Positions 3,251 through 20,587 of a stretch of DNA of 64,000 bases are shown here, in pieces. The position numbers and the translations under genes are program-made. The stretch is taken from the sequence record NC_023719.1, one strand, 5' to 3'. The first letter of the stretch is position 1. Each line of letters opens with the position of its first letter. The notes under the pieces are model-generated. The model saw only the letters and a list, made by a program, of their open reading frames with translations. It made no database searches and had not been told where the DNA came from.

Positions 3251-3640
3251 ATGAAAAAAAGATTGAAAAGAAAATCTAATAGTATATTAAATGTCAATGA
3301 TATATGCGTTAATTACGATTATGTACATGGTGCGTTAGAAAATATTACTTTTGGTCGCATTAGTCAATCAGAAGGACAACCTTTAGAAATATGGAAAGCA
3401 GAGGATGGTAACTTGGTTTTAATTAACGGTTACCATCGCTTTGTAGAAGGTATATTGAAGGGTTTAAATGAGTTTGATGTTATTTATGTTGAGTATGATG
3501 ATGAAAATAAAGAATATATTGATGAGTATAATCCTTCAGCATATGATTTCCTTAATAAGAATTCAAAATATAGAGGGTTAGAAGATTTCAAGAGTGAAGA
3601 AGAATTAGATGAACTCGCATCACTACTATTAGAAGGGTAG
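3251..3640 (+). CDS. ParB/sulfiredoxin-like domain protein with basic KRLKRKS leader
   Basis: QPLEIWKAEDGNLVLINGYHRFVEG resembles the ParB/Srx P-I-x-V...L-I-D-G-H-H-R motif. Confidence 0.6.
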   Translation: MKKRLKRKSNSILNVNDICVNYDYVHGALENITFGRISQSEGQPLEIWKAEDGNLVLINGYHRFVEGILKGLNEFDVIYVEYDDENKEYIDEYNPSAYDFLNKNSKYRGLEDFKSEEELDELASLLLEG

Positions 3641-3647
3641 GTAAATT

Positions 3648-3836
3648 ATGAAAAAGATTGAAACTTTACAAGATGTATCAGATTTTGTTGAAAAAGTAAA
3701 TAGTGTTTCAATAGATAACATAAATGATCTTTTTAAGCAATTAGAAATAAAGAAACAAAATGGTGAAAATGTAGATAAACAATTTGAAATGTTAGAAAAT
3801 TTTAAGAAAATGAAAACAATTTTTAACTCTAATTAG
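3648..3836 (+). CDS. Small hypothetical protein
   Basis: 62-aa ORF packed between neighbours. Confidence 0.55.
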   Translation: MKKIETLQDVSDFVEKVNSVSIDNINDLFKQLEIKKQNGENVDKQFEMLENFKKMKTIFNSN

Positions 3837-3849
3837 TAAGGAGATTTGC

Positions 3850-4137
3850 ATGGAAAAGATATATGAAGCTTTAAAAGGTGTAGTAGCTTCTGTTAAGTTG
3901 ATAAACCCTAATTTAAGTGATGAATTAGAGTTGGAATATAATGAAATTCAAGTTCGTTTTGCAAATAGCACTAATATGTTTTATTTTATAGAATTTGAAG
4001 ATGGGAAACTAAAGGTTTATGACTATGTGTTTTTAGATGGGCAAAAAAGAATTTACAATAATGTCGATTCTTTTATTAGTCATATAGAATTTAATTTTTC
4101 ACAATTAGTAAGTATAATTGAAAAAATATCAAAGTAA
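3850..4137 (+). CDS. Hypothetical protein
   Basis: AAGGAG RBS, 95 aa. Confidence 0.65.
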   Translation: MEKIYEALKGVVASVKLINPNLSDELELEYNEIQVRFANSTNMFYFIEFEDGKLKVYDYVFLDGQKRIYNNVDSFISHIEFNFSQLVSIIEKISK

Positions 4138-4153
4138 AGAAAGAGGTATTAAA

Positions 4154-4984
4154 ATGTCTAGAGATCAATTAGCTAAAATAGCAAAAGAAACAATTGAAAT
4201 CGTAAAAAAAGGCAGTTATGTAAATAAAAAGAAAAAGACAATATCAGTCAAAGATGATGTGGATTTTTCTGTAAAAAATACTAAGTTGTATTCACCAGAA
4301 GATGGAGATGAGTTACTTAAAAATTTAACTCAAAATGATATTTTACATCAAACAAAATTTGAATGTAAAAATGAAACAACTTTATTTGCTGCAAAGAGAC
4401 TATTAGATGAAGGTTTTAATAATGTAGTTGCTTTAAACTTTGCTTCAGCAAGAAATCCAGGTGGAGGTTTCTTAAAAGGGTCTTCAGCACAGGAAGAAAG
4501 TTTAGCAAGGTCTTCTGCATTGTATGATAGTATTTCTCAAATGAGAGAAATGTATGATTACAATTCTAAAAATAAGAGTGGATTATACTCTGACTATATG
4601 ATTTACTCGCCTTCAGTACCTGTATTTAGAGATAACACAGGGGAGTTACTAGAAAAAAGTTTTAATTGCTCCTTTGTTACTTCTCCGGCTGTTAATTTAA
4701 AAGTTTTACAACAGGAAGAAAAACAAAAGGCTAGAGTTGTCATGGAGCAACGAATCAGAAAGATACTTACTGTGGCACTAGAAAATAATTGTGATGCTAT
4801 TGTGCTTGGAGCGTTTGGTTGTGGTGTATTTGGAAATAGACCAGTAGATGTAGCTCAGATTTTTAGACAAGTTTTGAATAGTACACAGTTTAAGGGCAAA
4901 TTTAAAAAAGTATCATTTGCAGTTTACGACAAGACTCCTAATAAACAAATTTTTAATGTTTTTAAAAATACCTTTGGGAGATAA
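4154..4984 (+). CDS. Bacterial-type poly(ADP-ribose) glycohydrolase-like macrodomain (TIGR02452/DUF2263 family)
   Basis: LNFASARNPGGGFLKGSSAQEESLARSSAL (GGG-x6-8-QEE) and IVLGAFGCGVFGN motifs; start at ATG 4154 behind GAGG. Confidence 0.9.
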   Translation: MSRDQLAKIAKETIEIVKKGSYVNKKKKTISVKDDVDFSVKNTKLYSPEDGDELLKNLTQNDILHQTKFECKNETTLFAAKRLLDEGFNNVVALNFASARNPGGGFLKGSSAQEESLARSSALYDSISQMREMYDYNSKNKSGLYSDYMIYSPSVPVFRDNTGELLEKSFNCSFVTSPAVNLKVLQQEEKQKARVVMEQRIRKILTVALENNCDAIVLGAFGCGVFGNRPVDVAQIFRQVLNSTQFKGKFKKVSFAVYDKTPNKQIFNVFKNTFGR

Positions 4985-4991
4985 TTGATAT

Positions 4992-5222
4992 ATGGGTATT
5001 ACATTATATAAGATGAGGAAAATGATAGAAGATCATGAGTATGTTGAAGAAATGATAGATATGAGTGATTGGTATCTTGGTAAAGTATATTTACGCCTTA
5101 AATGTAATGATAAATACATTGCAGATATTTTAAGTGGTAACAATGAATTAGACGAATACATTAAACAAGTCAGTTTACTTGTGCCGTATAATTGTACTAT
5201 TGAATATGATATAGAAACATAA
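4992..5222 (+). CDS. Small hypothetical protein
   Basis: 76-aa ORF followed by a terminator. Confidence 0.55.
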   Translation: MGITLYKMRKMIEDHEYVEEMIDMSDWYLGKVYLRLKCNDKYIADILSGNNELDEYIKQVSLLVPYNCTIEYDIET

Positions 5223-5247
5223 GCAAACAAATTTTGTTTGCTTTTTT
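5221..5247 (+). terminator. Intrinsic terminator
   Basis: AAGCAAAC/GTTTGCTT stem followed by a T-run. Confidence 0.7.
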
Positions 5248-5275
5248 AATAAACATTTTTAAAGGGGATTTGGGG

Positions 5276-5680
5276 ATGTATAAGGCTACTGGTAAAATAG
5301 TATTTAATCCCGTAACAAGAGAAGGAGATATGCCAGATAAGTTATGGTGGGTGATGGTAGAATGCCCTCATGATATTATCGAATATTATAGGTATTGGGT
5401 AACTAAAAACAAAAACTTTAAAATAAGTTACCCACTATTTGGATCACATATATCTATCATTAGGAACGAAGAGCCACCTGATGAATTTAAACACTTGTGG
5501 GGTAAGAGAAATGGTATGGAAGTTGAGTTTACCTATACTCCAGACTTTGAAACAAACGGAAACTACTGGTGGTTAAAAGTGGATTGTCCACAATTAGATG
5601 ATATTAGAGAAGAGTTGGGTTTACCTAGAAAGCCTTTTTTTGATTATCATTTAAGTATAGGTAAACTCATAAGGGTATAA
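5276..5680 (+). CDS. 2H phosphoesterase superfamily protein
   Basis: Two HxS motifs, SHISII and YHLSIG, about 70 aa apart; start at ATG 5276. Confidence 0.7.
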   Translation: MYKATGKIVFNPVTREGDMPDKLWWVMVECPHDIIEYYRYWVTKNKNFKISYPLFGSHISIIRNEEPPDEFKHLWGKRNGMEVEFTYTPDFETNGNYWWLKVDCPQLDDIREELGLPRKPFFDYHLSIGKLIRV

Positions 5681-5731
5681 TTAACGCAATCAATATTCTT
5701 ATTAAGTTAAAAAGCAATGGAGGTGTAGTTA

Positions 5732-5935
5732 ATGAAAAAATTGATTAGTAAGTTTAAATCTTTTTTTGAGAGAGTTGGAGAACTTTTATTTAAAATTTTA
5801 GATCGTAGAGTATCTGTAGCTAAAGTAGCAAAAGCTGAAGATCTTGTAATTAGTAATGCTTCTTTAAAAAATATAAAAAGGGGAATGAGAAAAGTTTATA
5901 ATGAAGTGTATGGTGCCAGAGAAGATAAAAAATAA
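5732..5935 (+). CDS. Small basic hypothetical protein
   Basis: GGAGG RBS, 67 aa. Confidence 0.6.
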   Translation: MKKLISKFKSFFERVGELLFKILDRRVSVAKVAKAEDLVISNASLKNIKRGMRKVYNEVYGAREDKK

Positions 5936-5950
5936 AAAGAGGTGAAAGTT

Positions 5951-6238
5951 ATGCCAGGCGCTGTTAGATTAAATGATACGTGTAGTGGACATGACGATTT
6001 TGGTTCAAGACCTAATAATCAAGCGAGTACAGACGTGTTTGTGAATGGTAGAGGTGCTCATAGACAGGGAGATTCTTGGGCTGTACATTGTAACCCTGTT
6101 CCATCATGTCATGGCGGCAATGCTGCAAATGGAAGTCCTAATGTTTTTGTAAATGGAAAACCAATGTGTAGAATTGGTGATAGCGTGAATTGTGGTTCCA
6201 CAATGGTTAATGGTTCGAGTAATGTTTTTGTTAATTAA
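5951..6238 (+). CDS. PAAR-repeat spike-tip protein (T4 gp5.4-like)
   Basis: MPGAVRLND, VFVNGRGAHRQGD and VFVNGKPMCRIGD repeats with conserved His/Cys. Confidence 0.9.
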   Translation: MPGAVRLNDTCSGHDDFGSRPNNQASTDVFVNGRGAHRQGDSWAVHCNPVPSCHGGNAANGSPNVFVNGKPMCRIGDSVNCGSTMVNGSSNVFVN

Positions 6239-6266
6239 ACATTAATAGAGAAGAGGTTAGTAATAG

Positions 6267-6503
6267 ATGGGTATATTTGAAGAGATTTCTACATTTATTA
6301 AGATGGTTATTAAATCACCTATGAGAATAGTTTGTAAGAGAAAAAAAGATCATGATTGGTATAAACGTGGTGGTGGTTTTAACATTTTTGGAACTAAATA
6401 CCCTTATATTTGCAAAAAATGCGGTTGTAGAAGTAATGGTACCTTTGATGATTTAAAGAAGAAAGGGTTTAAAGGTAAAGCGAAAATTTATATTAAAAAA
6501 TAA
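6267..6503 (+). CDS. Small protein with possible zinc ribbon
   Basis: C-x5-H-D-W...YICKKCG pattern. Confidence 0.55.
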   Translation: MGIFEEISTFIKMVIKSPMRIVCKRKKDHDWYKRGGGFNIFGTKYPYICKKCGCRSNGTFDDLKKKGFKGKAKIYIKK

Positions 6504-6551
6504 TCTGTTAAATTAGATGACTATTTTACAGATAATATATTTATCAAATAA

Positions 6552-7056
6552 TTGAATTTCAATGCAGTTGACCACGTTTGCAAGGTGGGTAAACGTAATT
6601 TAGTAGGGCTATATCGGTATCGCTGCTGGATATAGGGAAAAATTACGTGGATAAGGACTAGTATCCTCGTGGAGTTCAGCGATAGAACAACTTCCCATGT
6701 TTGAAATTCAAAATGTCCCTAAGTTGCTAGGGGTTATTGAAAAGCAACCGGGTTAGAGAGGCTCATATAAGATACGGTATGAGTTGTAAGAGCTAAGAAG
6801 CCATTGTAAATTCTCTAATCAGGAGTGATGTTCACATGATAGGGCTTAGTGAACTAAATAAAATATGCTTAGTATCAATAAATTTAAGAGGTGAGAACAA
6901 TGTAGTACTTAACTGTGCTATTACCCCTATTTTCACAATTTTTAACGGGGGATTCCTTTTCAAGTTTGTTCTTAATAAACTTTGAGCCGATCGATGGTTA
7001 AAAGACGGAAAATTGTAAATAATTAAGCTGTCCTTCTGCGGAAGGACTAATTTTTT
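6552..7056 (+). ncRNA. Candidate large structured (ornate) non-coding RNA
   Basis: ~550-nt gap with no long ORF, visibly more G/C-rich than other intergenic gaps; many nested helices (6552-6562/6701-6711, 6593-6601/6640-6648, 6751-6760/6811-6820 and others), two loop pairings, ending in an intrinsic terminator. Confidence 0.75.
7030..7056 (+). terminator. Intrinsic terminator closing the candidate ncRNA
   Basis: GTCCTTC-TGCG-GAAGGAC followed by TAATTTTTT. Confidence 0.8.
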
Positions 7057-7084
7057 GTCAAAATTATGTTCTAGGAGTGTAGAT

Positions 7085-8068
7085 ATGAATAACGTATTTG
7101 ATTATGAAGATATTCAATTGGTACCAGCAAAGTGTATAGTTGAGAGCCGTTCCGAGTGTGATACATCTATTAGTTTAGGGAATCGAAAATTTAAATTACC
7201 AGTAGTTCCATCTAATATGCAAACGATTATTGATGAGAAAATAGCTGCTTATTTAGCAGAAAATGGCTATTTCTATGTAATGCATAGATTTGAACCCGAG
7301 ACTAGACTTGATTTTATTAAAGATATGCAAACTCGCAACTTATATGCTTCTATTAGTGTTGGTGTAAAAGAAGAAGAGTATCAATTTATTAATCAATTAG
7401 CTGATGAAAAACTTGTTCCAGAATATATCACTATTGATATAGCTCACGGACATTCTAATGCTGTTATTAAAATGATTCAACATATAAAGAAGATGTTACC
7501 AAATAGTTTTGTTATTGCTGGTAATGTTGGTACACCTGAAGCTGTTCGTGAACTTGAAAATGCAGGCGCAGATGCTACAAAAGTTGGTATTGGCCCAGGT
7601 AAAGTATGTATTACTAAAATCAAAACTGGTTTTGGTACTGGCGGCTGGCAGTTAGCTGCATTGCGTTGGTGTTCAAAAGTAGCTACTAAACCAATAATTG
7701 CTGATGGTGGTATTCGTACTAACGGTGATATTGCTAAATCTGTACGTTTTGGCGCTTCAATGGTTATGATTGGTTCGCTATTTGCGGGTCACGAGGAATC
7801 ACCAGGTGAGACGATAGAAAAAAATGGTAAATTATATAAAGAGTATTTTGGATCCGCTTCTGAATATCAAAAGGGTGAAAAGAAGAACGTTGAAGGAAAG
7901 AAGATACATGTAGAATGTAAAGGGAGTTTGAAAGATACGTTGATTGAAATGGAACAAGATCTTCAATCTTCAATTTCTTATGCTGGTGGTAAAGATTTAT
8001 TAGCAATTAGAAATGTAGATTATGTCGTTGTTAAGAACTCCATTTTCAATGGAGATAAAAGTTATTAG
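7085..8068 (+). CDS. guaC: GMP reductase
   Basis: [36 protein letters not shown] and [16 protein letters not shown] as in Bacillus-type GuaC; ATG 7085 behind AGGAG. Confidence 0.95.
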
Positions 8069-8079
8069 GAGGTTATTAA

Positions 8080-8334
8080 ATGCTTTCAGATACAAAACAA
8101 ATGTATAGTTTTATCAAGATGAGAGGTTTCAAACAATCAAAAGATGTACTAGGTACTTATTTTGATAAAGGTGATCACAAGCTAACAATTAATAAACAAG
8201 CTGGTTGGTTTATTTGTTATTATAATAGAAAATCTGGAATGTCATGGCAGTTAATAGCTAAAAGCCAAACTCTTGATAATTTCTCTTCAGCTTTAGGTTG
8301 GGTTGTTCAAGAAATACAGAAAAATCAACTATAA
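8080..8334 (+). CDS. Hypothetical protein
   Basis: GGAGG RBS, 84 aa. Confidence 0.65.
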   Translation: MLSDTKQMYSFIKMRGFKQSKDVLGTYFDKGDHKLTINKQAGWFICYYNRKSGMSWQLIAKSQTLDNFSSALGWVVQEIQKNQL

Positions 8335-8349
8335 GAAAGGCGGTTTAGA

Positions 8350-8829
8350 ATGATAACAGCTTTTAGAAGTGATTTAACTAAATTGCAAAACGTAGATTAT
8401 ATAGTGAACGCTGCGAATGCAAAAGGTCCCATGGATTCTGGAATAGCTGGGGCAATAAGAATAAATGGTGGAACTGAAATACAAGATGCTGCAATGTTAA
8501 TATGTTCTAAATTAAATTATCAACCTGGAGATATTTATGTTACACATGCTGGTAGATTATCATTTAAGAAAATAATTCACCTTGTAACAATGGAAAACCC
8601 AGGTGGAGTAACTTCATATGATATTGTTAGAAAATGCCTTCAGAATTTAATTTTATACTGTAAAGTTAATAATATTAAGAAAATCGCTTTACCAGCTTTA
8701 GGTACAGGTGTAGGTGGTTTAGATATTGATAAAATAGCAGGAATTTTTAAAGAAATATTGGGTAGTGTAGAAGAAATAGAGTTTTTAGTTGTAGATATTG
8801 ATCCAATGTTTATTTACAATTTTAAATGA
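8350..8829 (+). CDS. Macro domain protein (ADP-ribose binding/hydrolase)
   Basis: DYIVNAAN, GIAGAI-x3-GG, IIHLVT and IALPALGTGVGG macrodomain motifs. Confidence 0.9.
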   Translation: MITAFRSDLTKLQNVDYIVNAANAKGPMDSGIAGAIRINGGTEIQDAAMLICSKLNYQPGDIYVTHAGRLSFKKIIHLVTMENPGGVTSYDIVRKCLQNLILYCKVNNIKKIALPALGTGVGGLDIDKIAGIFKEILGSVEEIEFLVVDIDPMFIYNFK

Positions 8830-8863
8830 AATAAGTTGTTTTAAGAAAGATTATTTGATGTAT

Positions 8864-8900
8864 ATAGGATATAGCTAGTTTAGCTATATCCTATTTTTTT
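8864..8900 (+). terminator. Intrinsic terminator
   Basis: 14-bp perfect stem ATAGGATATAGCTA/TAGCTATATCCTAT plus T-run. Confidence 0.8.
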
Positions 8901-8928
8901 GATTTTAATATTGAAGAGGGTGTTTATA

Positions 8929-9849
8929 TTGAAAAGATTAAAGAGACAATCAAAAGTATTTAGACAATCAAGATTGAAAAAGAAATCTTGGGATGCAGTG
9001 AGTTTAAAACACTATACTAGTACCCAACATTTTATCGAGATAATGAACGAAGGCCAAATAACTCCTGGTGGTTACAATGGGAATATCTCAGGTGGTGGAC
9101 ATGTTAAGTATTTATCGATGAGTGATGGCAGCAATACTACAAAAAAAATGTCACCATCAGAAATAGATAGATTATTCTCTAGTGATTTATGGGAAATTGA
9201 TAAAGATTTATTGAACTATGTGAATGAAACGAAAGATACTGATGAATGGTACTCAAAACAAATTAATGTAAATATTATTCAACCTAGTCATGATCAAAAT
9301 GGTGTTTATTTAACTAATAGGTCTGATGAAAATGATTACGGAAAAGAAGCTGTTAATAATGGTTTAAGTGACGATTATCCTAACTTTGAAATAACTTTAG
9401 AATTTAATGTTCAAACTGATGCATTAGGTCCTGACTTAGATGATGGTAAAATAGATAAAGAGAGCGAAACTCCACTTTGGAGACAAACTATTGATTCTAT
9501 AGGTCAGTGTGTACATTATGGTCCTATTTCTATTGACTCAATTAGCCAAGTGATAATAAAGGATTATGGTCAAATAAATGGATATGAAATGAGGTTTTCA
9601 GATAGAGATAATTTTTTAAGTTGGGCTAGTGAATTTATAAGTTTTGAACAAGGTTTAAGTGCAGCAGATGCATATTCGCAAATTCAAAAAATGTATGAAG
9701 AATTTGACAATTATTATGAAGAAGAAGACTTTGATGATGAAAATATTAATATCAACGACGATGATGATTTTGATGATGATGATATTGATTTTGACATAGA
9801 TGATTTCGAATTCCCTGAAGATGAATTAAATGATGATGATTTAAAGTAG
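8929..9849 (+). CDS. Putative ADP-ribosyltransferase-fold protein, paralogue A, with basic leader and Asp-rich tail
   Basis: LKHYTS..EGQITPGG, GVYLT, ITLEFNV..LGPD, HYGPISIDSI resemble the H-x-T / VYL[ST] / GPI pattern of Tpt1/KptA-Arr-like ART folds; TTG start behind GAGGGTG. Confidence 0.55.
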   Translation: MKRLKRQSKVFRQSRLKKKSWDAVSLKHYTSTQHFIEIMNEGQITPGGYNGNISGGGHVKYLSMSDGSNTTKKMSPSEIDRLFSSDLWEIDKDLLNYVNETKDTDEWYSKQINVNIIQPSHDQNGVYLTNRSDENDYGKEAVNNGLSDDYPNFEITLEFNVQTDALGPDLDDGKIDKESETPLWRQTIDSIGQCVHYGPISIDSISQVIIKDYGQINGYEMRFSDRDNFLSWASEFISFEQGLSAADAYSQIQKMYEEFDNYYEEEDFDDENININDDDDFDDDDIDFDIDDFEFPEDELNDDDLK

Positions 9850-9914
9850 TTAAAATTGTAAAGATTAATCAAACTTATTCATATAATTATCTTGTCTAAG
9901 AAGGAGGATGAATA

Positions 9915-10751
9915 GTGAGCAACGCAGATATACAATATAATAAATTAGTATCTAACATTCTATTAAATGGATTGTGGGATAAAGATCAAGAAGTAAGAAC
10001 AAGATGGAAAGATGGTACCTCAGCTTACTCTAAAAGTATAATAGGGGCTCAGTTTAAATTTGATAATTCTGAAGTTCCAATTCTTACAACAAAAGAAGTA
10101 AAATGGGAAGCTGCTATTAAAGAAATCTTATGGATTTGGAAACAAAAAAGCAATGTAGTGCAAGATTTAAAAGATGTTGGTGTAAATATTTGGAATGATT
10201 GGGAATTAGCTGATGGCACTATTGGTAAAGCGTATGGGTATCAACTTGGCAAAAAATGTTTAAATTTAAATGGCGAAAAAGTAGATCAAGTTGATTATTT
10301 ATTACACAATTTAAAAAACACTCCCGCTTCCAGACGACACATTACTACATTATGGTCTATAGAAGATTTAAATGATATGAGTTTAACTCCTTGTGTTTGG
10401 AAAACTCAGTGGTTTGTAAAACAAAATAAATTGCATTTAATTGTAGAAGCTCGTTCGAGTGATACAGGTTTAGGGTTACCATTTAATATCTTTCAATACA
10501 ATGTTCTACAGAGAGTATTTGCTCAAGTTTTAGGTTATGAATTAGGCGATTATGTTTTCAACATTGGGGATGCCCATATCTACGAAAGACATATTGAACC
10601 TTTAACTTCTCAATTGGAATTACCTCAACATGATGTTCCAACTTTATGGATTAATCCAGAAAAGAAGAACTTTTACGATTTTGACATATCAGATTTCAAA
10701 TTAATTGGTTACGAGCATGGTCCTTTCATTAGATTACCAATAGCTATTTAG
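9915..10751 (+). CDS. thyA: Thymidylate synthase
   Basis: PILTTK, LTPC catalytic Cys, ARSSDTGLGLPFN and GDAHIYERH motifs. Confidence 0.95.
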   Translation: MSNADIQYNKLVSNILLNGLWDKDQEVRTRWKDGTSAYSKSIIGAQFKFDNSEVPILTTKEVKWEAAIKEILWIWKQKSNVVQDLKDVGVNIWNDWELADGTIGKAYGYQLGKKCLNLNGEKVDQVDYLLHNLKNTPASRRHITTLWSIEDLNDMSLTPCVWKTQWFVKQNKLHLIVEARSSDTGLGLPFNIFQYNVLQRVFAQVLGYELGDYVFNIGDAHIYERHIEPLTSQLELPQHDVPTLWINPEKKNFYDFDISDFKLIGYEHGPFIRLPIAI

Positions 10752-10762
10752 GAGGGTAAGAT

Positions 10763-11329: not shown

Positions 11330-11689
11330 ATGAAACGTCTTATTAAAAAGTCAGAAAAGACTTATGAAACTAAGAATGATAATAATGAAGTTGAACAGCG
11401 TGAAGAAGTAGATAATGAAGTTCATGAAGAAGTACAAGAAACAAATCATGAAGAAGTACATCCTGCAGATATGGAGAGAGAAGACCCTTATCTTGGAAGA
11501 TATGTAGAAATCACAAATCGTAGATCAAAGTATTATGGTTATCACGCAAGAGTAGATGATAAATTTTATACTGATAGATATAAAATTTACTTAGAACCAA
11601 AAAGAAGTGATGACGATGGTGGAAAAGGGTATATTATCAATTTTGTAGGTGTAAATGTTGCTTCTAACTGGTTTACTGTTGTTGAGTAA
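11330..11689 (+). CDS. Hypothetical protein with KRLIKKS leader, acidic linker and SH3/KOW-like C-terminus
   Basis: MKRLIKKSEK start; E/H/V-rich linker; GRYVEITNRRSKYYG..ARV strand pattern. Confidence 0.65.
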   Translation: MKRLIKKSEKTYETKNDNNEVEQREEVDNEVHEEVQETNHEEVHPADMEREDPYLGRYVEITNRRSKYYGYHARVDDKFYTDRYKIYLEPKRSDDDGGKGYIINFVGVNVASNWFTVVE

Positions 11690-13143: not shown

Positions 13144-13170
13144 ATGTAGGTAAGGAAAGGGAGATTTGTT

Positions 13171-13473: not shown

Positions 13474-13574
13474 AGAGAGGTTTTCCTCTCTTTTTTTACA
13501 TAAAAGTGAATTAATTGTTATTACATTTTAACTCTTCTATATTCTTTATATGAATAGAAAGGAGGGGGAAAGTT

Positions 13575-13910
13575 GTGAGTGATTTTGATAAAACATTAAT
13601 GGGGAACATTGATGATGTTTTAAGAGATTTGCAAAATACAAAAGGGGTACGTTTAGATAAAGATAAAGTTGAGTTTTTAAAAATGATTTCAAAAACAAAA
13701 TACTCTGGACTAACAACTCCAAAACTAGTATCTTCAATGAATTTTTTAAAAGAGAAAAACGACGAATGGTTTGTTGAGCTATTAGATGATGGATTAGTTG
13801 AAAAGATTTCTTATCAAGCCCCTACAAGTAAAGTCAGACAAACATTTGAAGGTTGGTTTATCACTACTGCAGGAAGAAAAGTCTTAAAAGATGTCTTAAA
13901 GAAAATGTAA
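13575..13910 (+). CDS. Possible winged-helix DNA-binding protein
   Basis: LLDDGLVEK...WFITTAGRKVL resembles a wHTH wing and terminal helix. Confidence 0.45.
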   Translation: MSDFDKTLMGNIDDVLRDLQNTKGVRLDKDKVEFLKMISKTKYSGLTTPKLVSSMNFLKEKNDEWFVELLDDGLVEKISYQAPTSKVRQTFEGWFITTAGRKVLKDVLKKM

Positions 13911-13989
13911 GAGACAGTTAAACTCTGTCTCTTTTTTGATTAATATATAGGTATATTTAAATTTTCCAAATAAGAGAGGAAGTATACCT

Positions 13990-14466
13990 ATGAAACAATT
14001 TATCGAAGAAAAAGACATTTATATCGAAATGATGCAGCAATTAAAGGACAAATTCCATGACACGCTAGGTCACATTTTTGTTGATGAAATTTTAGTTATG
14101 ACAGATACTGAGTTTGAAATTAAGCCACCACGTGGAAAAGGTGGAGAAGATCCAAGTGAAGAAGCGATTGCGAAATGGGAAGATAAAAAACGTAAAGCTT
14201 GGAAATTTGAAATGAAGAAAATTCCAAAGTTATATCGAGATGCGCTTGATAAAAATAAAGAATTTGTTCTTATTGTTCGACAAAGCCTAGTTAAAGAATT
14301 AACAGATGCACAGGTTATTGCTCATGTTTATTCTGAAATGCGTAAAATCAATCATGAATATAAATTACAAAAACCAGATGTTCATACATTCTCTGATTTA
14401 GCGGAAAAATTAGGTCGTTCGGATTGGGACTCTGCTTATGATCTTCCTAATATTTTAGAAAATTAA
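13990..14466 (+). CDS. Phage metallopeptidase-like domain lacking HExxH, paralogue A
   Basis: LGHIFVDEI...EFVLIV...HVYSEMRKI...KPDVHTFSDLAEKLG aligns with 24493..24951. Confidence 0.5.
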   Translation: MKQFIEEKDIYIEMMQQLKDKFHDTLGHIFVDEILVMTDTEFEIKPPRGKGGEDPSEEAIAKWEDKKRKAWKFEMKKIPKLYRDALDKNKEFVLIVRQSLVKELTDAQVIAHVYSEMRKINHEYKLQKPDVHTFSDLAEKLGRSDWDSAYDLPNILEN

Positions 14467-14470
14467 GTGG

Positions 14471-14833
14471 GTGTTTAATTTGGATCAAGAGTTAATAGAT
14501 ATTCGACAAGATTTATTAAATATGCAACACCAAATAGCAAATTTAAGTATTTCAATTGAGAATTTAAGTAATCAAAATTTTACTCAACAAAACAATATTA
14601 ACATGATGGCTCAATCTATAAATATGCAAATTCAACTTTTAAATCAGATGAATCAAGTAATTAGCAATCTTACAAATAAGTTATCAGATATGGAGATTAA
14701 TTTTGATAATTCCGATAACTTCACTAAAGATATAATTGATGGCCAAAACGTTATTTTAGCTGAAATTAATGAGTTAAAGAATTCCATAGAAGGAATTCGA
14801 TTCTATATGTTAAATAGCAACTCAAATTTCTAA
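14471..14833 (+). CDS. Asn/Gln-rich coiled-coil protein
   Basis: Long heptad repeat. Confidence 0.6.
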   Translation: MFNLDQELIDIRQDLLNMQHQIANLSISIENLSNQNFTQQNNINMMAQSINMQIQLLNQMNQVISNLTNKLSDMEINFDNSDNFTKDIIDGQNVILAEINELKNSIEGIRFYMLNSNSNF

Positions 14834-14938
14834 TGTTATATTTTTCAACAGATGCCTATATTTTAAATATTGAATAGTTTCAAACAAAAGGCATGTGTTA
14901 GTTCAAAATAATCTTAGAAATTGGTGGTGAATTGGTAA

Positions 14939-15184
14939 ATGAAGTCTTCAAAGAGAGTTGATGAAAGAATCGTTAAAGATTATCGAATAATTGATTCTGC
15001 TTGGGATGAATTCTCTGATTACGTTGGTGAACATAATATAGGAACACCTTTGACTGTTAAACAATTTGAAGAAATATTTAGTAAACTAAATAGAAACAAT
15101 AAGTTTTCGCCAATGAAGGATTATATTTTGGAATCTTTCAGGAATGATTGTTATGCATGGCCATTTGTAGAAAAGAACCAATGA
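14939..15184 (+). CDS. Hypothetical protein
   Basis: 81-aa ORF behind GGTGGTG. Confidence 0.55.
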   Translation: MKSSKRVDERIVKDYRIIDSAWDEFSDYVGEHNIGTPLTVKQFEEIFSKLNRNNKFSPMKDYILESFRNDCYAWPFVEKNQ

Positions 15185-15265
15185 TTTATTGGTTCTTTTT
15201 TTTTAAAAAAAGCGGAAAAATACATATAATTCTTTTAATTAAAAAGAGAAAGGTTTGTTGTATCT

Positions 15266-15820
15266 TTGAAAAAACGAGGTTATTTAGAAATTATTTCAGG
15301 CGGAATGTACTCCGGCAAAAGCGAAGAATTAATAAGACGATTAAAAAGATGTAGTTTTGCAAATATTAAATTTCAATTATTTAAACCAGAAATTGACAAT
15401 AGGTATAGCGAGAACAAAGTAGTAACGCATGATAAAGATTCACAACTAAGCGCTCTATCAGTTAGTACTCCAAAAGAATTGATATCACTAGTTGAATCAG
15501 ATACTACGGTTGTTGGTATTGATGAAGTTCAATTCTTTGATGAAACAATTGTTGAAGTAATAGAGCAATTAAATGAAAAAGGTATAAGAGTCGTAGCTGC
15601 TGGATTAGATATGTATAGTACTGGGGAACCATTTGGTTCAACTGGAATTTTGATGGCAAAAGCTAAGTACGTAAGTAAACTACACGCAGTATGTGTAGTA
15701 TGTGGGAATAACGCTTATATTTCTAAGGCTATTAGTGAGAATGATAGTGCTAATAATGAAAGTACAGTTAAAGTTGGAAGCGTCGGGGATTATGTTGCAG
15801 TATGTGAAAATTGTAAATAA
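15266..15820 (+). CDS. tdk: Thymidine kinase
   Basis: GGMYSGKSEEL P-loop, GIDEVQFF, AGLD and CVVCG...CENC zinc site. Confidence 0.95.
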   Translation: MKKRGYLEIISGGMYSGKSEELIRRLKRCSFANIKFQLFKPEIDNRYSENKVVTHDKDSQLSALSVSTPKELISLVESDTTVVGIDEVQFFDETIVEVIEQLNEKGIRVVAAGLDMYSTGEPFGSTGILMAKAKYVSKLHAVCVVCGNNAYISKAISENDSANNESTVKVGSVGDYVAVCENCK

Positions 15821-15844
15821 AACAAATACAAAGGGGAGACACTT

Positions 15845-16192
15845 ATGTCAAAAGAAATAGGGAAGCAGGCGATAGTAACTGATCATGGCAGTCGAAGAAT
15901 AAAAGATAGACTAGGATTAAGCAAAAAAATAGCAGATAAGGTATCTCAAAAAGCGTTAGAGAACGGTGTTAGTCATAGTGAAACAAAGGGTAGCTTTAAA
16001 AAATATATAGATGCTTTATATTTAAAACATAAAAAAGCTAATAATATTAAGATTTATCACAGAAAGATTTATTTGTTTAGAAATGAAGTATTAATCACAG
16101 TATTAAATTTACCTAATAAATATTCTGTGGTTGCAGATAAATTACAAAGAATTAAAAACCAAGAGAAAGAAAAAACAAAAGAGTCTCAATGA
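15845..16192 (+). CDS. Hypothetical basic protein
   Basis: GGGGAG RBS; VTDHGSRRIKDR; followed by a terminator. Confidence 0.65.
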   Translation: MSKEIGKQAIVTDHGSRRIKDRLGLSKKIADKVSQKALENGVSHSETKGSFKKYIDALYLKHKKANNIKIYHRKIYLFRNEVLITVLNLPNKYSVVADKLQRIKNQEKEKTKESQ

Positions 16193-16379
16193 CTCTTTTT
16201 TATTTTGAAAAATTTTCTAAAATATTTTGGTATTTTTTCATGAAATCCATCATACATTGTATTATAAAGAATTATTATTTAGTGTTATATTTTCAATAGT
16301 TTTTAATAATATTAGTAATTATAATAATTTGTCTTCTTTTAAGAAAAAGTGATATTTTAATAAATTTAAAGTAGAGGGA

Positions 16380-16685
16380 GTGGTGAGATTGTTATGTATA
16401 AATTGTTTGCAAAATGCTACAAATAAACTTATAGCAGATGACATTATCATCCTTGAATATTTGAATAATCAGGGGGCAACAATTCCACAATGTACTATGT
16501 CAAGAGAAACTATAAAAGAAGAATTGAAGATGACAAATCATAAGTGTTATTCGTCAATTAGTCGTTTAGAATGTTTAGATATGATTGAACGTAAAGTTGG
16601 TACAAAATCAAGTAGATATTTTATTACAAAGAATGGTCAACATGTTTTGTATTTGGTGAATGATAAATTACAGGAGGTTGAATAA
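16380..16685 (+). CDS. Winged helix-turn-helix protein (TubR-like by position)
   Basis: MSRETIKEELKMT..CYSSISRLECLDMIER...YFITKNG wHTH pattern; abuts the tubulin gene. Confidence 0.65.
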   Translation: MVRLLCINCLQNATNKLIADDIIILEYLNNQGATIPQCTMSRETIKEELKMTNHKCYSSISRLECLDMIERKVGTKSSRYFITKNGQHVLYLVNDKLQEVE

Positions 16686-17816
16686 ATGGCTGGTACTAAA
16701 ATTGGTTTTCTTTGTTTTGGTGAAGGCGGTTCAAATGTTGGAGAGTATGCTGCTCAAAAAGGTTTTCCAGTAGTTGCAGTCAATAGCGCTAAAATAGATT
16801 TAGAAAAAATAAAAATAATTCCAAAAGATTGTAGGATTCACTTGGATGGCTGGGAAGGTGCTGGCAGAAATAGAGATGTAGGTAGGGAAGCAGTTCTATC
16901 TCACGCAGAAACAATCTTTGAAAAGATAAAAGATAAATTTAAAGATTGTGACATGGTGTTTTCAGTAGCTTCAACAGCTGGCGGTACAGGTTCAGGATCT
17001 TTAGCGGTTGGTATCGAACTTCTTTCAGAAATAAATAGTAAAGTTGGAGCGATAACTATTTTGCCAGACAAAAATGAAAGCCCAAAAGCTCATATGAATT
17101 CTTTAGAATGTTTCTCTGAGTTAAGCCAATACGAACAATTGAATAGTACGTTTATCATTGATAATGAAAAAGCAAATCAAGTATTTAAAGGCAAAGACAA
17201 AATTCAAATTTATCAATTATCTAATAATCAATTGATTGACAATTTAGCGGAAATATGCTCACTAACCGATCAACACGCTTTAGTTTCAAATTTTGATAAA
17301 AATGATCTACTTGAAATACTAAGTGAACGAGGAACCACTATAATTAGCAAGATAACAATACCAACAGAAGAATTGAAAGATGAAGTAGAAATTGTTAATG
17401 CAATTAGAAAATCTTGGGAAACTGTTTGTTCTTCTGACATTGGTGATGGGCAAATAGTAAAAGCTGGTGTATTTGGTAAAATACCAAAAGAATTAACTTC
17501 AATGATAGATTCAAGAAAAGTTTTTGAAGAAATTGGAATGCCATATGATATAATTGAATCTTACTATTTGAATACTGAACACTCTAATCATTGTATTTTC
17601 TATACTATTCTTTCTGGATTATCCTACCCAATTGAAAGATTGAAACAAATAGAAAGTGAAGTACAGATGATTGAACAAGAATTGATTAATAGAGTAGAAG
17701 TTTCTAGGACCCAAGTTTTTTCAACTAATAATTGGAACTCTAAGTTTAAACGACCTGAACAAAAACAAAATGTTAAAACATCGTTAAGTGATAGATTAAC
17801 AAGATTTACTAAGTAA
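16686..17816 (+). CDS. Tubulin/FtsZ-family GTPase (TubZ/PhuZ-like)
   Basis: FGEGGSNVG, GAGRNRDVG, AGGTGSG tubulin signature, IIDNEK and NFDKND T7-loop-like motif. Confidence 0.9.
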   Translation: MAGTKIGFLCFGEGGSNVGEYAAQKGFPVVAVNSAKIDLEKIKIIPKDCRIHLDGWEGAGRNRDVGREAVLSHAETIFEKIKDKFKDCDMVFSVASTAGGTGSGSLAVGIELLSEINSKVGAITILPDKNESPKAHMNSLECFSELSQYEQLNSTFIIDNEKANQVFKGKDKIQIYQLSNNQLIDNLAEICSLTDQHALVSNFDKNDLLEILSERGTTIISKITIPTEELKDEVEIVNAIRKSWETVCSSDIGDGQIVKAGVFGKIPKELTSMIDSRKVFEEIGMPYDIIESYYLNTEHSNHCIFYTILSGLSYPIERLKQIESEVQMIEQELINRVEVSRTQVFSTNNWNSKFKRPEQKQNVKTSLSDRLTRFTK

Positions 17817-17821
17817 TATTT

Positions 17822-17852
17822 AACAAGAGAGAATATTCTCTCTTGTTTTTTT
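17822..17852 (+). terminator. Intrinsic terminator
   Basis: AACAAGAGAGAA/TTCTCTCTTGTT stem plus T-run. Confidence 0.8.
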
Positions 17853-17879
17853 TATTGTTAGAATAAGGTTGGTGATACT

Positions 17880-18977
17880 TTGAAAAAAATCTACTTTTTT
17901 AAAGATGGGCATAAAGATATGCATAATTACTTGGGTAAAAAAGGCGCAAACCTATGCGAAATGTATAATATGGATTTGCCAGTACCAAATGGATTTATTA
18001 TACCCACATACTTAAATAGAGAAACAAAAGAATTAAGAAGAGAAATAGAAAATGCAATTGAAAAACTTGGAGGTAGGTTAGGAGAAGATTTATTTGTTTC
18101 AGTACGTTCAAGTGCTCCCACCTCAATGCCAGGAATGATGGATAGTTTTTTGAATATAAGTAATTATGATGACTTATTTAATTCTATAGAGCTAGTGGTT
18201 AATTCATGGAACAATAAAAGAGCTGTTACTTATAGGGAAAATAATGGTATCTCTGAAGGAGTGGGTACAGCTATAGTAATACAAAAAATGATCTTTGGAA
18301 ATAAAGACGAGAATTCTGGTTCTGGAGTTGTTTTTAGCAGAAATCCTAATAATGGAGAAGAAGGACTAGTCGGGGAGATATTGTTTAATTCTTTTGGTGA
18401 GGAATTAGTGCTTGGTAAAAAGACACCACTTTCAATTACTATATTAAAAGAAAAAATGCCCAACGTTTATACATTATTGGAAAATATATCAAAAAAGCTT
18501 GAAACTCATTTTTCATCTATGCAAGAAATAGAATTCACTATTGAAGAAAAAGAGTTATATGTATTGCAGACAAGAGAAGTAAAAAAGAAAAACAAAATAG
18601 TTAAGTTTAAAATAAAAGAAAAACAAAAAAATCCAATAACAATAGGTATAGCATCTTCTTATGGAGCGGCTACAGGGTTAGTTGTTTTTGATTCAAAGAA
18701 AGCAGTAGAATTAAAATCAAAAGGTAAAAACGTTATTTTAGTAAGACTTGAGACTAGTCCCGATGACATTGAGGGAATAATCGCTTGCGATGGCATTGTA
18801 ACTTTACAGGGTGGAGCAACTTCTCATGCAGCTGTTGTTGCTAGAAGTATGAATAAGCCATGTATTTGTGGCTGTCAATACTTAGATGTAAATGAATTAG
18901 AATGGATAACAATTGAAGGTCAAACTGGTAAAGTTTTTCTCGGTGAGTACGATTTAGAAATAGATGATAGTCTATAA
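17880..18977 (+). CDS. Truncated pyruvate phosphate dikinase-like protein (ATP-grasp plus phospho-His domain only)
   Basis: LGKKGANL..PVPNGF, VSVRSSAPTSMPGMMD, EFTIE..LQTR and GGATSHAAVVAR; ends without the C-terminal PEP/pyruvate barrel. Confidence 0.85.
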   Translation: MKKIYFFKDGHKDMHNYLGKKGANLCEMYNMDLPVPNGFIIPTYLNRETKELRREIENAIEKLGGRLGEDLFVSVRSSAPTSMPGMMDSFLNISNYDDLFNSIELVVNSWNNKRAVTYRENNGISEGVGTAIVIQKMIFGNKDENSGSGVVFSRNPNNGEEGLVGEILFNSFGEELVLGKKTPLSITILKEKMPNVYTLLENISKKLETHFSSMQEIEFTIEEKELYVLQTREVKKKNKIVKFKIKEKQKNPITIGIASSYGAATGLVVFDSKKAVELKSKGKNVILVRLETSPDDIEGIIACDGIVTLQGGATSHAAVVARSMNKPCICGCQYLDVNELEWITIEGQTGKVFLGEYDLEIDDSL

Positions 18978-19093
18978 TATATCATTCTTATATTATTTTT
19001 TACTGATAATTTAATTTAAAATATATTTCTATTTTAATTAATATAAATATATAGTAAATATATTAAGAATAAGAGAAAGAGAGGTGTTTTAAA

Positions 19094-19177
19094 ATGGGTT
19101 GCAAATGTAATGATTGTTGTTGTGGGTGCGAATGCAAAGATTGTGAAAATGGATGTTGTGATAAAAGTGAAGAATAA
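19094..19177 (+). CDS. Metallothionein-like 27-aa peptide
   Basis: MGCKCNDCCCGCECKDCENGCCDKSEE* (10 Cys); GAGGTG RBS at 19081; terminator directly downstream; below the ORF-track cutoff. Confidence 0.7.
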   Translation: MGCKCNDCCCGCECKDCENGCCDKSEE

Positions 19178-19187
19178 ATAATAAATG

Positions 19188-19219
19188 AGTCGATTAGTTA
19201 AAATCTAATCGACTTTTAT
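19188..19219 (+). terminator. Intrinsic terminator
   Basis: AGTCGATTAG/CTAATCGACT stem plus T-run. Confidence 0.75.
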
Positions 19220-19245
19220 TTATTATTTAAACATGAGGTGGTAAC

Positions 19246-19662
19246 TTGACTAGAAATATGATAGTAGAAATAGAAGAGTTTATAGATTCGTTAATAATAA
19301 TGCACAATATTATTAATGAAAACAACATAAGTTTTGAGTTAAAAAAATCAGATAATGGTGTATTAACTTTATTTTCTATTAGTGGAAATTTAATTATAAA
19401 TTCAATTAATGTAATAAAATTAGTTACAGTAACCGCAGAAGAAGATTTTTCTTGCACAGCGATGTGTGAAGTAAGTAGATTCAGTCCATTTTATAGAAAG
19501 TTACTAGACTATAAGAGCTCTCACGCTGGTTATATGAATTTAGATTTGGATAATTATCATAAAAAGTTTGAGTATAACTTTAGAGATTTAAAAAATTTTA
19601 ATGATTTCTTTATGAAAATGATATGGGACGTTTTTATCTCTAACTTTATTTCTTCAAAATAA
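19246..19662 (+). CDS. Hypothetical protein
   Basis: GAGGTGG RBS, 138 aa. Confidence 0.6.
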   Translation: MTRNMIVEIEEFIDSLIIMHNIINENNISFELKKSDNGVLTLFSISGNLIINSINVIKLVTVTAEEDFSCTAMCEVSRFSPFYRKLLDYKSSHAGYMNLDLDNYHKKFEYNFRDLKNFNDFFMKMIWDVFISNFISSK

Positions 19663-19747
19663 ACTTTTTAAAAACCATATAATTGATATATAATATATTG
19701 CAACTCTTATTTTAGATTTGAATTTTAAATAATAGGAGTTGTTTTTT

Positions 19748-20587
19748 TTGAAGAGATTAAAGAAAAAAGCTTGGGAAACCATTGAATTATATCATCACAC
19801 TAGTTCGCAGTTTTTTATGCAAGTGATGGAAGAAGGGCAACTTACTTCTGGTGGATACAATGGCAACATATCTGGAGGAGGTCACACTAGTATTTTCGAT
19901 GTATTTAGCGATGAAGACCCTTCATCTAATATATATTACCCTTTAATAATTTTAGATGAAATGATAAAAGTACCTAGTGATGATAAAAAAGTTACTAAAA
20001 CATTAACTGATTTAGTTAATAAAATGAAAGAAGAAAACCCTGATTGGCAATCTGAAGAAATAGAAGTAAGTGAGACTAAGCCTAGTGGAAACGAAATAGG
20101 CGTTTACTTAAGTAGTGATAAATACAATTCTGTTGGTTATGCTGAAGATGCAGTTTCTAAAGGCGATACAAGTAAATTAAACTTTGAAGTTACATTAGCT
20201 ATTAAGGTTCAAACTGATGCTTTAAGTCCGGATTACGATGATCTAGTTAGCCTTGAGTTAGATATTGATGATAGAAGTTCTGTTCCACTATGGAAACAAT
20301 CACTTAATCAAGTTGAACAGTGTGTTCATAATGGACCTATTGATTCTGAAAGCATAGTTAGTGTTACTTTTCATAGTTTAGAAAATGCTTATAATGATTC
20401 TGATGGGAAGTTTAATGATGAAGATGAATTTACTGAATTTGTAAGTCAATATATTAAAGAAGATGAGCCTATGTCTACAATGGAAGCGTTAAGTCAATTA
20501 GCTTTGATGGATTCAGAATATGCAAATACAGAAAGTTTAGTGATGTCTTCAAAGAAAATAAAGAGATTAAAAAAGTTTAATAAATAA
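19748..20587 (+). CDS. Putative ADP-ribosyltransferase-fold protein, paralogue B
   Basis: LYHHTSS..EGQLTSGGYNGNISGGGH, GVYLSS..VGYAEDAV, VQTDALSPD, HNGPIDSESI; clear paralogue of 8929..9849. Confidence 0.55.
   Translation: MKRLKKKAWETIELYHHTSSQFFMQVMEEGQLTSGGYNGNISGGGHTSIFDVFSDEDPSSNIYYPLIILDEMIKVPSDDKKVTKTLTDLVNKMKEENPDWQSEEIEVSETKPSGNEIGVYLSSDKYNSVGYAEDAVSKGDTSKLNFEVTLAIKVQTDALSPDYDDLVSLELDIDDRSSVPLWKQSLNQVEQCVHNGPIDSESIVSVTFHSLENAYNDSDGKFNDEDEFTEFVSQYIKEDEPMSTMEALSQLALMDSEYANTESLVMSSKKIKRLKKFNK

Follow-up and report, generated by a model that had tools for sequence, protein, structure and literature searches.

A short basic N-terminal tag on unrelated acidic proteins of phage G: a candidate head-targeting label

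The HK97 protease carries a C-terminal targeting signal and encapsulins make use of cargo-loading peptides, which in both cases are terminal and dock inside HK97-fold shells. The C-terminus of P22 gp8 and the scaffold helix of 80alpha, the latter pairing with the capsid N-arm, are basic coat-binding helices. In T4, the head genes follow the order 20-67-68-21-22-23 and the internal proteins are basic. The capsid targeting sequence (CTS) of T4, 10–20 residues long, stands at the N-terminus of core and internal proteins and of the ADP-ribosyltransferase Alt (PMC5694885), its presence on IPI–III, Alt and core proteins being taken from the summary of Mullaney and Black (1996) in PMC5694885. Head cargo with N-terminal targeting regions is also found in the jumbo phages phiKZ and SPN3US, together with families of head-protein paralogs, the propeptides being 80–160 residues long with A/S/G-x-E ends and the protease of the T4 type (PMC5694885, PMC10052503).

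The stretch of DNA analyzed here (the window, 64,000 nucleotides of record NC_023719.1) corresponds to positions 62001–126000 of the genome of phage G, a giant Bacillus/Lysinibacillus phage. No larger phage is known to have been cultivated, and for two thirds of the phage G genes no function is known. A first-pass annotation of the window had cited four basic leaders on otherwise unrelated proteins and read them as a possible capsid-targeting signal. All four were found where it had placed them and the RefSeq gene starts agree. A further motif, RRLIRK, is real but had been placed at 41914, whereas it forms the N-terminus of gp172, whose annotated TTG start lies at window position 41932. The five genes are as follows:

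gp111, 3251..3640, + strand: 129 aa, ATG start; leader MKKRLKRKS (3251–3277), then an acidic body
gp123, 8929..9849, + strand: 306 aa, TTG start; a domain of the ADP-ribosyltransferase (ART)-fold family, then a highly acidic tail
gp126, 11330..11689, + strand: 119 aa, ATG start; leader MKRLIKKS, then an acidic body without a recognized fold
gp141, 19748..20587, + strand: 279 aa, TTG start; leader MKRLKKKAW and an ART-fold domain
gp172, 41932..42135, + strand: 67 aa, TTG start; zinc-ribbon-like, leader MRRLIRKLNS

The leader of gp123 is doubled (MKRLKRQS at 8929–8952 and SRLKKKS at 8968–8988, SRLKKKSW being residues 14–21), and gp141 has a second copy of the motif, KRLKK at 20561–20575, in its disordered C-terminal tail (KIKRLKK near the C-terminus). 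The leader is conserved as MKRLIRKS in the gp126 ortholog of a related phage (L060, 42% identity), and the start of gp172 is supported by an ortholog beginning MKRLMKVSN. The four examples fall into three downstream families and not four, gp123 and gp141 being paralogs (39% identity). The designation of gp111 as ParB-like is less firm: it shares a DG..G.HR motif with gp284, which is the sole basis for the name, as Pfam gave no match. The gene of gp123 lies directly 3' of the macro-domain gene gp122.

The consensus of the tag in phage G proteins is M-K-R-L-(I/V/K)-(K/R)-K-(S/A), which is basic, N-terminal and eight residues in length. Its strict form is present on approximately 23 phage G proteins and its loose form on 32, and it marks about 4–5% of the proteome. 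A genome-wide scan of the 695 phage G ORFs placed the tag far above chance. The core (loose) motif, [KRST]-R-L-x-[KRS] scored within the first 12 residues, was identified in 32 ORFs against an expectation of 1.0 ± 1.0 (maximum 6) from 2000 column-preserving permutations, by which chance and a Lys-rich N-terminal bias are ruled out. Internally, just 15 occurrences were found in 137,612 residues. The tripeptide KRL occupies residues 2–4 in 18 of the 695 ORFs, with the runner-up tripeptide occurring four times. When a position-specific scoring matrix (PSSM) was used, 23 N-terminal leaders scored 16 or more (gp111, 22.6), compared to 12.8 for the top internal match. The final residue of the tag is small (S or A) in 22 of the 32 carriers. 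No published description of this tag was found in the literature searched.

Selection on the tag acts at the peptide level and not on the DNA, as indicated by synonymous codon variation (Arg as AGA, CGT, CGA, and CGC; Leu as TTA, TTG, CTT, and CTA, at genome-typical frequencies) and by the little information held at the wobble positions. Upstream of the tag, the ribosome-binding site alone is conserved. The same codon variation and low wobble information rule out a conserved DNA or RNA element. A Sec, Tat or lipoprotein signal peptide is likewise ruled out, as all 32 carriers lack an h-region: no carrier has a 12-residue window starting at residues 6–40 with a mean Kyte-Doolittle hydropathy above 1.8.

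The modular nature of the leader proved to be genuine, genome-wide and retained in relatives, with at least ten unrelated families carrying it. The domains behind the tag include ART-fold, ParB-like, GNAT, SLOG, deoxyribosyltransferase-like, ferritin/Dps-like and WYL-like types. The tag is located in a flexible tail outside the recognizable enzyme domains, and Pfam domains begin past it (for example, the SLOG domain starts at residue 14, the deoxyribosyltransferase-like domain at 25 and the ferritin domain at 102). There are also ART-fold and GNAT paralogs that lack the tag. A tblastn search of the phage collection with gp336 had phage G itself as its sole match. The first-pass description of these proteins as otherwise acidic was borne out: all carriers are unusually acidic beyond the tag, with a median net charge of −11 per 100 residues, whereas the other phage G proteins have a median of −1.7 (p = 1e-12), and tag carriers are acidic in a second genome also (p = 5e-8).

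The gp123/gp141 family (phrog_13493) has an ART beta-sandwich fold in its AlphaFold2 model (gp141 family, pLDDT 82). All 50 structural neighbors listed are of the ART fold or a close ART-like fold, at middling Z scores of up to 7.5, and the best Foldseek matches, whose E-values are weak (0.026 or more), are ART toxins; PARP matches of the paralogs were all sub-threshold. Within the family His16 and Tyr120 are invariant, with Asp162, 164, and 165 as candidates for the acidic residue of a possible catalytic triad of the H-Y-E or R-S-E type. Most gp141-family members carry an additional motif near the C-terminus, and such C-terminal copies would not be needed by a purely cleavable propeptide.

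The tag is concentrated in the head-assembly block of phage G (gp9–gp21), where it is present on six of 13 genes (gp9, 10, 12, 13, 17, and 20) compared to 26 of 682 elsewhere (p = 8e-6). In the corresponding block of the 379-kb relative G001, 6 of 23 genes are tagged (p = 8e-5), and a homolog of gp172 sits inside this block. Gene gp20 directly follows that of the prohead protease gp19, identified by its match to phrog_18299 (2.6e-19), and lies between the protease and capsid genes. The protease was the only protein recognized when the head-module orphans were searched against PHROGs and Pfam. Phage G and each of the eight relatives that yielded the gene have a tagged gp20-family protein, and R and L of the motif are invariant among them. 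A model of gp20 predicts a helical hairpin followed by a disordered acidic tail, and a profile of the family gave no match among PDB sequences. From its position, composition and helical model, we infer that gp20 is a scaffold or core protein.

The capsid protein of phage G is trimmed by 27 residues (PMC5646251), and counting 27 residues places the cut after Leu-Ala and before Gln. Apart from the small residue at the end of the tag, neither the tags nor the residues behind them resemble this deduced cleavage site, nor was a T4-like protease site found there. Internal density has been observed beneath the vertices of the phage G head, its DNA packing density is low and bubblegrams revealed no inner body of the phiKZ type (PMC5646251). 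The tagged ferritin-like gp346 has been detected in particle proteomics (PMC12484599). This is weak evidence for packaging, as the same particle data set also contains many replication enzymes. In its accessible portion, Buchan 2025 makes no mention of tagged gene products other than gp346, and no tagged protein is labeled as a virion structural protein in 14 record stretches.

The tag is kept genome-wide in related metagenomic jumbo phages. Orthologs of gp296, gp284, gp126, gp172, and gp10 retain it at overall identities of 35–52%, KRL occupies residues 2–4 in 18 of the 446 ORFs of G001, and the DNA pattern of the tag gave 3–11 matches in each of five relatives compared to none for a reversed control. 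Changes within the motif are shared by carriers of one lineage. Arg is found at motif position 5 in six of six carriers of the L047 lineage and Lys in four cargo orthologs of a near relative, the scaffold-like protein having Arg in both; at position 4, G001 prefers Val and phage G Ile. Such concerted lineage changes suggest that one common receptor recognizes the tag.

It is plausible, with the case for and against about evenly balanced, that the tag is a head-targeting label analogous to the T4 CTS, a portable docking peptide that recruits proteins into the assembling prohead. The capsid-targeting reading of the first-pass annotation has circumstantial support, namely the enrichment in the head block and the scaffold-position protein gp20. 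As with the CTS, a short N-terminal peptide is common to unrelated proteins. It is present on proteins at scaffold positions within the head module, which are putative core or scaffold proteins, and on ART-fold carriers, as the CTS is on an ADP-ribosyltransferase. The genes also run much as in T4, from the portal through small core proteins and the protease to the putative scaffold and the capsid. The two differ in that the tag sequence, basic KRLxKK(S/A), is unrelated to the CTS, the CTS is removed at a gp21 site (L/I-x-E) for which phage G has no evident counterpart, the phage G protease belongs to another family, the carriers are acidic unlike the basic T4 internal proteins, and some have C-terminal copies. 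With HK97 and the encapsulins, phage G has in common a short terminal peptide on unrelated cargo and an HK97-fold shell, and one of its tagged proteins is ferritin-like, a classic type of encapsulin cargo; however, as a rule their peptides lie at the C-terminus and are hydrophobic or rich in Gly, and they have no sequence similarity to the tag. P22 and 80alpha likewise place a terminal basic amphipathic helix on a scaffold-type protein, for which binding to an acidic capsid N-arm is proposed in phage G, but here the helix is N-terminal, approximately eight residues long and copied onto approximately 25 non-scaffold proteins. Phages phiKZ and SPN3US resemble phage G in their N-terminally targeted head cargo and paralog families, and differ from it in their long propeptides, the ends of these and their T4-type protease, while the phiKZ-like inner body is lacking in phage G.

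A fuller scheme can be put forward tentatively, as one possible form of head targeting. The tag would fold as a two-turn amphipathic basic helix, with M1, L4, I5, and A/S8 on one face, and bind a conserved acidic component of the head. The favored receptor is the propeptide at the N-terminus of the capsid protein, whose 27 residues are acidic and invariant. The tag, shared with the scaffold, would in this way load a large set of acidic NAD- and nucleotide-directed enzymes for co-injection and would be freed once the protease cuts off the capsid propeptide. The enclosed enzymes (ART-fold, ParB-like, GNAT, SLOG, deoxyribosyltransferase-like, and Dps-like) would be delivered with the DNA, while the ADP-ribose erasers, which lack the tag (PARG gp114, macro gp122, and glycohydrolase gp234), would remain cytoplasmic. 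If docking on the propeptide is true, this packaging logic would be distinct from that of T4. If head targeting is true, it would show cargo sorting in HK97-fold phages without a T4-type protease and tie scaffold binding to cargo loading, provide a first handle on the non-DNA contents of the head and on enzymes possibly acting in the first seconds of infection, and offer a ready-made, very short tag for loading foreign proteins into large HK97-type shells.

An unlikely but serious alternative is that the tag docks on some other common partner unrelated to packaging, which the head proteins would use for their own reasons. Candidates for such a partner are an AAA+ protease or adaptor of host or phage, in which case the tag would act as a timed degron, as well as a chaperone and some phage-made compartment or cytoskeletal hub, for instance tubulin gp138. 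The motif does behave like a generic linear motif, being short, located in disordered tails and found at either terminus in the gp141 family, many carriers are encoded outside the structural modules, and the concerted lineage changes imply a single receptor without naming which. Head-block enrichment in two genomes and the constant presence of the tag on the protein between the protease and capsid genes argue against this reading; no candidate partner has been identified, and the N-motifs of ClpX, a class of degron, fit the sequence poorly. Should packaging prove wrong, a conserved motif on acidic bodies across a jumbo clade would still indicate an undescribed interaction hub.

We consider it distinctly improbable that the tag is an amphipathic basic helix binding non-specifically to anionic surfaces (membrane lipids or nucleic acid), by which acidic enzymes would be gathered at membrane or DNA. 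Hydrophobic positions 1, 4, 5, and 8 do share one helical face with Lys/Arg opposite, K-R-L occurs in the membrane-targeting helices of MinD and FtsA, and such surfaces would repel acidic bodies that lacked a helix of this kind. For lipid binding, eight residues that offer no more than Met, Leu, Ile, and Ala are nevertheless weak, the invariance of Arg-Leu and the lineage-specific concerted substitutions favor a specific pocket, and the enrichment in the head module is left unexplained; a secretion-signal variant founders on the missing hydrophobic stretch behind the tag in all 32 carriers. That the tag is a by-product of paralog descent, of a preference for A-rich Lys codons at initiation or of an mRNA operator that overlaps the start codon and serves a translational regulator is highly improbable and has been largely refuted. 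While gp123/gp141 and several other carriers are paralogs, and no residue is more frequent than Lys at positions 2–10 of phage G proteins, the tag is present in ten or more unrelated families and missing from some paralogs, and composition-preserving permutations yield approximately one carrier in place of 32. The by-product reading is also contradicted by the free synonymous variation (including AGA versus CGN for Arg), by TTG or GTG starts in 7 of the 23 strict carriers and by the C-terminal copies.

When 2.9 million viral contigs were searched with the strict-tag DNA pattern, 72 stretches were obtained. These consisted of out-of-frame or very short matches, a genuine signal peptide that recurred, and acidic proteins, the last of these, among the matches listed, occurring mostly in large contigs. 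Given this mixed nature, AT-rich phages in general do not carry the tag. In a scan of the region, sigma-70-type promoter sites were no more numerous than in shuffles. A genome-wide search for upstream motifs identified a strong class (CAGTTTACA, spacer, TGATATAAT) clustered at 375–475 kb, which does not tell tagged and structural genes apart. Many of the tagged genes are located among genes of nucleotide metabolism, a point against packaging.

By megablast the window is 100% identical to Bacillus phage G (JN638751/NC_023719), in which it spans plus-strand genome positions 62001–126000. ORFs were called on the whole phage G genome (30% G+C, with nearly all genes on the plus strand), each start codon being chosen by its ribosome-binding site, and the starts so called match RefSeq in every case checked. 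Among the 695 ORFs, KRL occupies residues 2–4 in 18, the runner-up tripeptide occurring 4 times, and 23 proteins begin M-(K)-[KR]-R-L (strict carriers). The core motif [KRST]-R-L-[IKVLMRFT]-[KRS] was found within the first 12 residues of 32 ORFs, as against 1.0 ± 1.0 (maximum 6) when each N-terminal column was permuted among the proteins in 2000 trials, so the tag noticed in the first-pass annotation is commoner at N-termini than expected by chance. Inside proteins it occurs only 15 times in 137,612 residues. On a PSSM derived from the leaders, the 23 N-termini reach 16–25 and no other proteome site exceeds 12.8. Their consensus reads M-K-R-L-(I>K>L,R,V,M)-(K>R)-(K)-(S/A). The tag is not mentioned in Buchan 2025, Hua 2017, the phage G tail paper, the comparative jumbo-phage survey or a 2026 review. 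Among 2.9 million viral contigs, matches to its strict DNA pattern are rare, and those outside large contigs are mostly a true signal peptide or out of frame.

The four leaders originally cited are real, coinciding with the N-termini of annotated genes:

Window 3251, plus strand: ATG start and leader of gp111
Window 8929, plus strand: TTG start and leader of gp123
Window 11330, plus strand: ATG start and leader of gp126
Window 19748, plus strand: TTG start and leader of gp141

A good ribosome-binding site at the correct spacing precedes both TTG starts. The products gp123 and gp141 are 39% identical over about 250 residues (BLAST) and both match phrog_13493, which marks them as paralogs, so that the four examples represent three families. 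A further motif, RRLIRK, had been placed at 41914; the motif is present, but its position is that of the N-terminal leader of gp172 (annotated TTG start at 41932, MRRLIRKLNS), whose ortholog in a related phage starts MKRLMKVSN.

Judged from its codons, the tag is under selection as an amino-acid sequence, since the ribosome-binding site is the only conserved element upstream of the 23 strict leaders, information within the tag amounts to 1–2.5 bits at first and second codon positions and about 0.4–0.5 at the wobble position, and 7 of the 23 use TTG or GTG starts. Synonymous codons are also varied, for arginine (AGA 14, CGT 5, CGA 3, CGC 1) and for leucine (TTA 12, TTG 7, CTT 3, CTA 1), with a choice near genome-wide usage.

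The domains identified behind the tag were as follows:

gp284: ParB_N (Pfam, 3e-9)
gp334: nucleoside deoxyribosyltransferase-like (Pfam, 8e-16)
gp345: SLOG (Pfam, 3e-6)
gp346: ferritin-like (Pfam, 1.6e-13)
gp508: GNAT (Pfam, 2.5e-5)
gp296: WYL-like (weak Pfam match)
gp53, gp251, gp336, gp610: PARP/diphtheria-toxin-type (sub-threshold Pfam matches)

Because these domains start downstream of the tag and some paralogs are untagged (ART-like ORFs starting MKTLYHSTS and MEKVYHGTS, and GNAT-family paralogs of gp508), the tag is an add-on to many folds. A secretion signal was ruled out, as no hydrophobic stretch follows the tag in any of the 32 carriers. The description of these proteins as otherwise acidic was borne out: without their first 12 residues, the carriers have a median net charge of −11 per 100 residues, compared with −1.7 in the other 663 ORFs (Mann-Whitney p = 1e-12).

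The last group of four, in which an (F/Y/M)-H-G-T-S strand lies 2–10 residues past the tag, is connected by BLAST to gp123, gp141 and gp233. An AlphaFold2 model of gp141 (11 homologs, pLDDT 82) is disordered at the tag (residues 1–10) and over the last 14 C-terminal residues. All 50 of its 50 listed structural neighbours are of the ADP-ribosyltransferase (ART) fold or close ART-like relatives, including TreX, Tpt1, heat-labile enterotoxin A, PltA, DarT and PARP domains; with Z reaching a middling 7.5, the predicted structure supports a shared ART fold and does not speak for function.

Tagged genes are concentrated in the head block gp9–gp21, where 6 of 13 ORFs (gp9, gp10, gp12, gp13, gp17 and gp20) carry the tag compared with 26 of 682 elsewhere (Fisher p = 8e-6). 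Within this block gp19 is a head maturation protease (phrog_18299, 2.6e-19). Directly downstream lies gp20, for which no protein family or PDB match was found and which was modelled as a helical hairpin (residues 16–99) with a disordered acidic tail; from its position, shape and charge we infer a scaffold or core protein. In position, the small tagged proteins encoded from portal to protease correspond to T4 gp67 and gp68. The phage G capsid protein gp27 (genome 23289–24137, outside the window) keeps 255 of its 282 residues in the virion, the first 27 being absent by N-terminal sequencing (PMC5646251). The removed stretch, cut after Leu-Ala by our own count, is acidic and, from residue 9 onward, hardly varies among relatives; for these reasons it is the favoured candidate receptor of the basic tag. 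Extra internal density under the capsid vertices and an unusually low DNA packing density have been reported, and no phiKZ-like inner body was found (PMC5646251).

A portal-protein search returned 13 viral contigs with portals 60–84% identical, in which the order portal, gp15-like, small proteins, protease, gp20-like, gp21-like and capsid protein is kept. In all 8 relatives in which its gene was found, the gp20-like protein starts with the tag. Matches to a degenerate DNA pattern for M-K-R-L-(I/V/M)-(K/R) numbered 11, 3, 4, 6 and 7 in five relatives, and a reversed control pattern gave 0 in the same five. In the complete 379-kb relative G001, 18 of 446 ORFs have KRL at residues 2–4; the core motif sits at 17 N-termini and turns up internally 7 times over 98,271 residues. 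The G001 carriers are also acidic (−12.5 vs −1.0, p = 5e-8), and the head block of this relative has 6 of 23 ORFs tagged compared with 11 of 423 elsewhere (p = 8e-5), along with three further M-(K/R)-R-L starts of degenerate form. The tag is retained in orthologs of gp296, gp284, gp126, gp172 and gp10 at 35–52% overall identity. With gp141 as query, a word search recovered eight metagenomic homologs, all starting MKRLKKKA or a close variant, on contigs that share the phage G neighbourhood (tubulin, PPDK fragment, TrbL and VirB4-like genes) and bear additional tagged genes nearby. Most also have (K)RL(K/I/R)(K/R) near the C-terminus, and these copies show it to be a linear docking motif of a general kind, which need not be a cleavable propeptide.

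Variation among lineages bears on what the tag binds. At motif position 5, arginine is found in 6 of 6 carriers of contig L047 and lysine in the four cargo orthologs of its close relative, with arginine in the scaffold-like protein of both; position 4 prefers valine in G001 and isoleucine in phage G, and head genes of some lineages bear S-R-L-(K/R)-K. Co-evolution with one receptor would be expected to leave such concerted differences. The tag might bind some other common partner, which we consider rather unlikely; non-specific binding to membrane or nucleic acid seems less likely still, and the Arg and Leu of the tag are invariant in the gp20-like alignment. That the similarity is a by-product is highly improbable.

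The best-supported reading, to which we give about even chances, makes the tag a docking signal for head targeting, the analogue of the T4 capsid targeting sequence. In T4 that sequence is found on core and internal proteins and on the ADP-ribosyltransferase Alt (PMC5694885), and the phage G tag is likewise carried by putative head scaffold/core-region proteins and by enzymes. As a set, the enzymes agree with what phages are known, or have been proposed, to inject. Against head targeting, however, stand the C-terminal copies, the lack of an obvious protease site after the tag, and the annotation, in which no carrier is labelled virion structural across 14 stretches of the phage G record; the only carrier reported in the particle proteome is gp346, and that proteome is permissive, also listing many replication enzymes (PMC12484599).

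Genes for ADP-ribose erasers, none of them tagged, lie beside or near tagged ART-fold genes:

Window 4154–4984: gp114, microbial-type PARG (3e-53)
Window 8350–8829: gp122, macro domain (7e-25), directly upstream of gp123
Genome 163172–164823: gp233 and gp234, the ADP-ribosylglycohydrolase gp234 being divergent from gp233

A pairing of this last type recurs in the metagenomic relative L029; among the gp141 homologs, one adjoins an ADP-ribosylglycohydrolase in the way gp233 adjoins gp234. Speculatively, the tag would sequester ADP-ribose "writers" while untagged "erasers" were retained in the cytoplasm. A terminator-like hairpin with a 14-bp stem and T-run (window 8864–8894) lies just upstream of gp123, which therefore probably begins a new transcript after gp122; such sites are three to four times commoner in window 2800–21300 than in shuffles (15 vs 4.2).

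Conflict-related genes abound in the gp111–gp123 part of the genome. Between these two tagged genes lie gp116 (window 5276–5680), a homolog of the anti-CBASS nuclease Acb1 (Buchan 2025), and the PAAR-domain protein gp118 (5951–6238; record annotation). The GMP reductase gene gp120 (7095–8057) shares 74% DNA identity with a gene found in Staphylococcus phage 42E and relatives, which points to horizontal exchange between phages of Firmicutes. Upstream of gp141 are the tubulin/FtsZ-like gp138 and the pyruvate-phosphate-dikinase fragment gp139 (16686–18977), a trio with conserved synteny in a metagenomic relative; the C-terminal tails of the tubulins are loosely tag-like (DRLTRF in phage G, DRLSKF in a relative). 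A conjugation-like module (gp153, gp155, gp156) occupies 25772–31336, with gp153 (TrbL/VirB6-like, 1.8e-11), gp155 (VirB4/TraG-type P-loop ATPase, 1.6e-15) and then an 825-aa orphan, and is kept in relative L025 a few kb from gp141-like genes. Outside the window, a strong promoter class comprising CAGTTTACA, about 17 nt and TGATATAAT, often with TATAAGG, is concentrated at genome 375–475 kb, where about 76 upstream regions have it; this is probably the host-polymerase early region.
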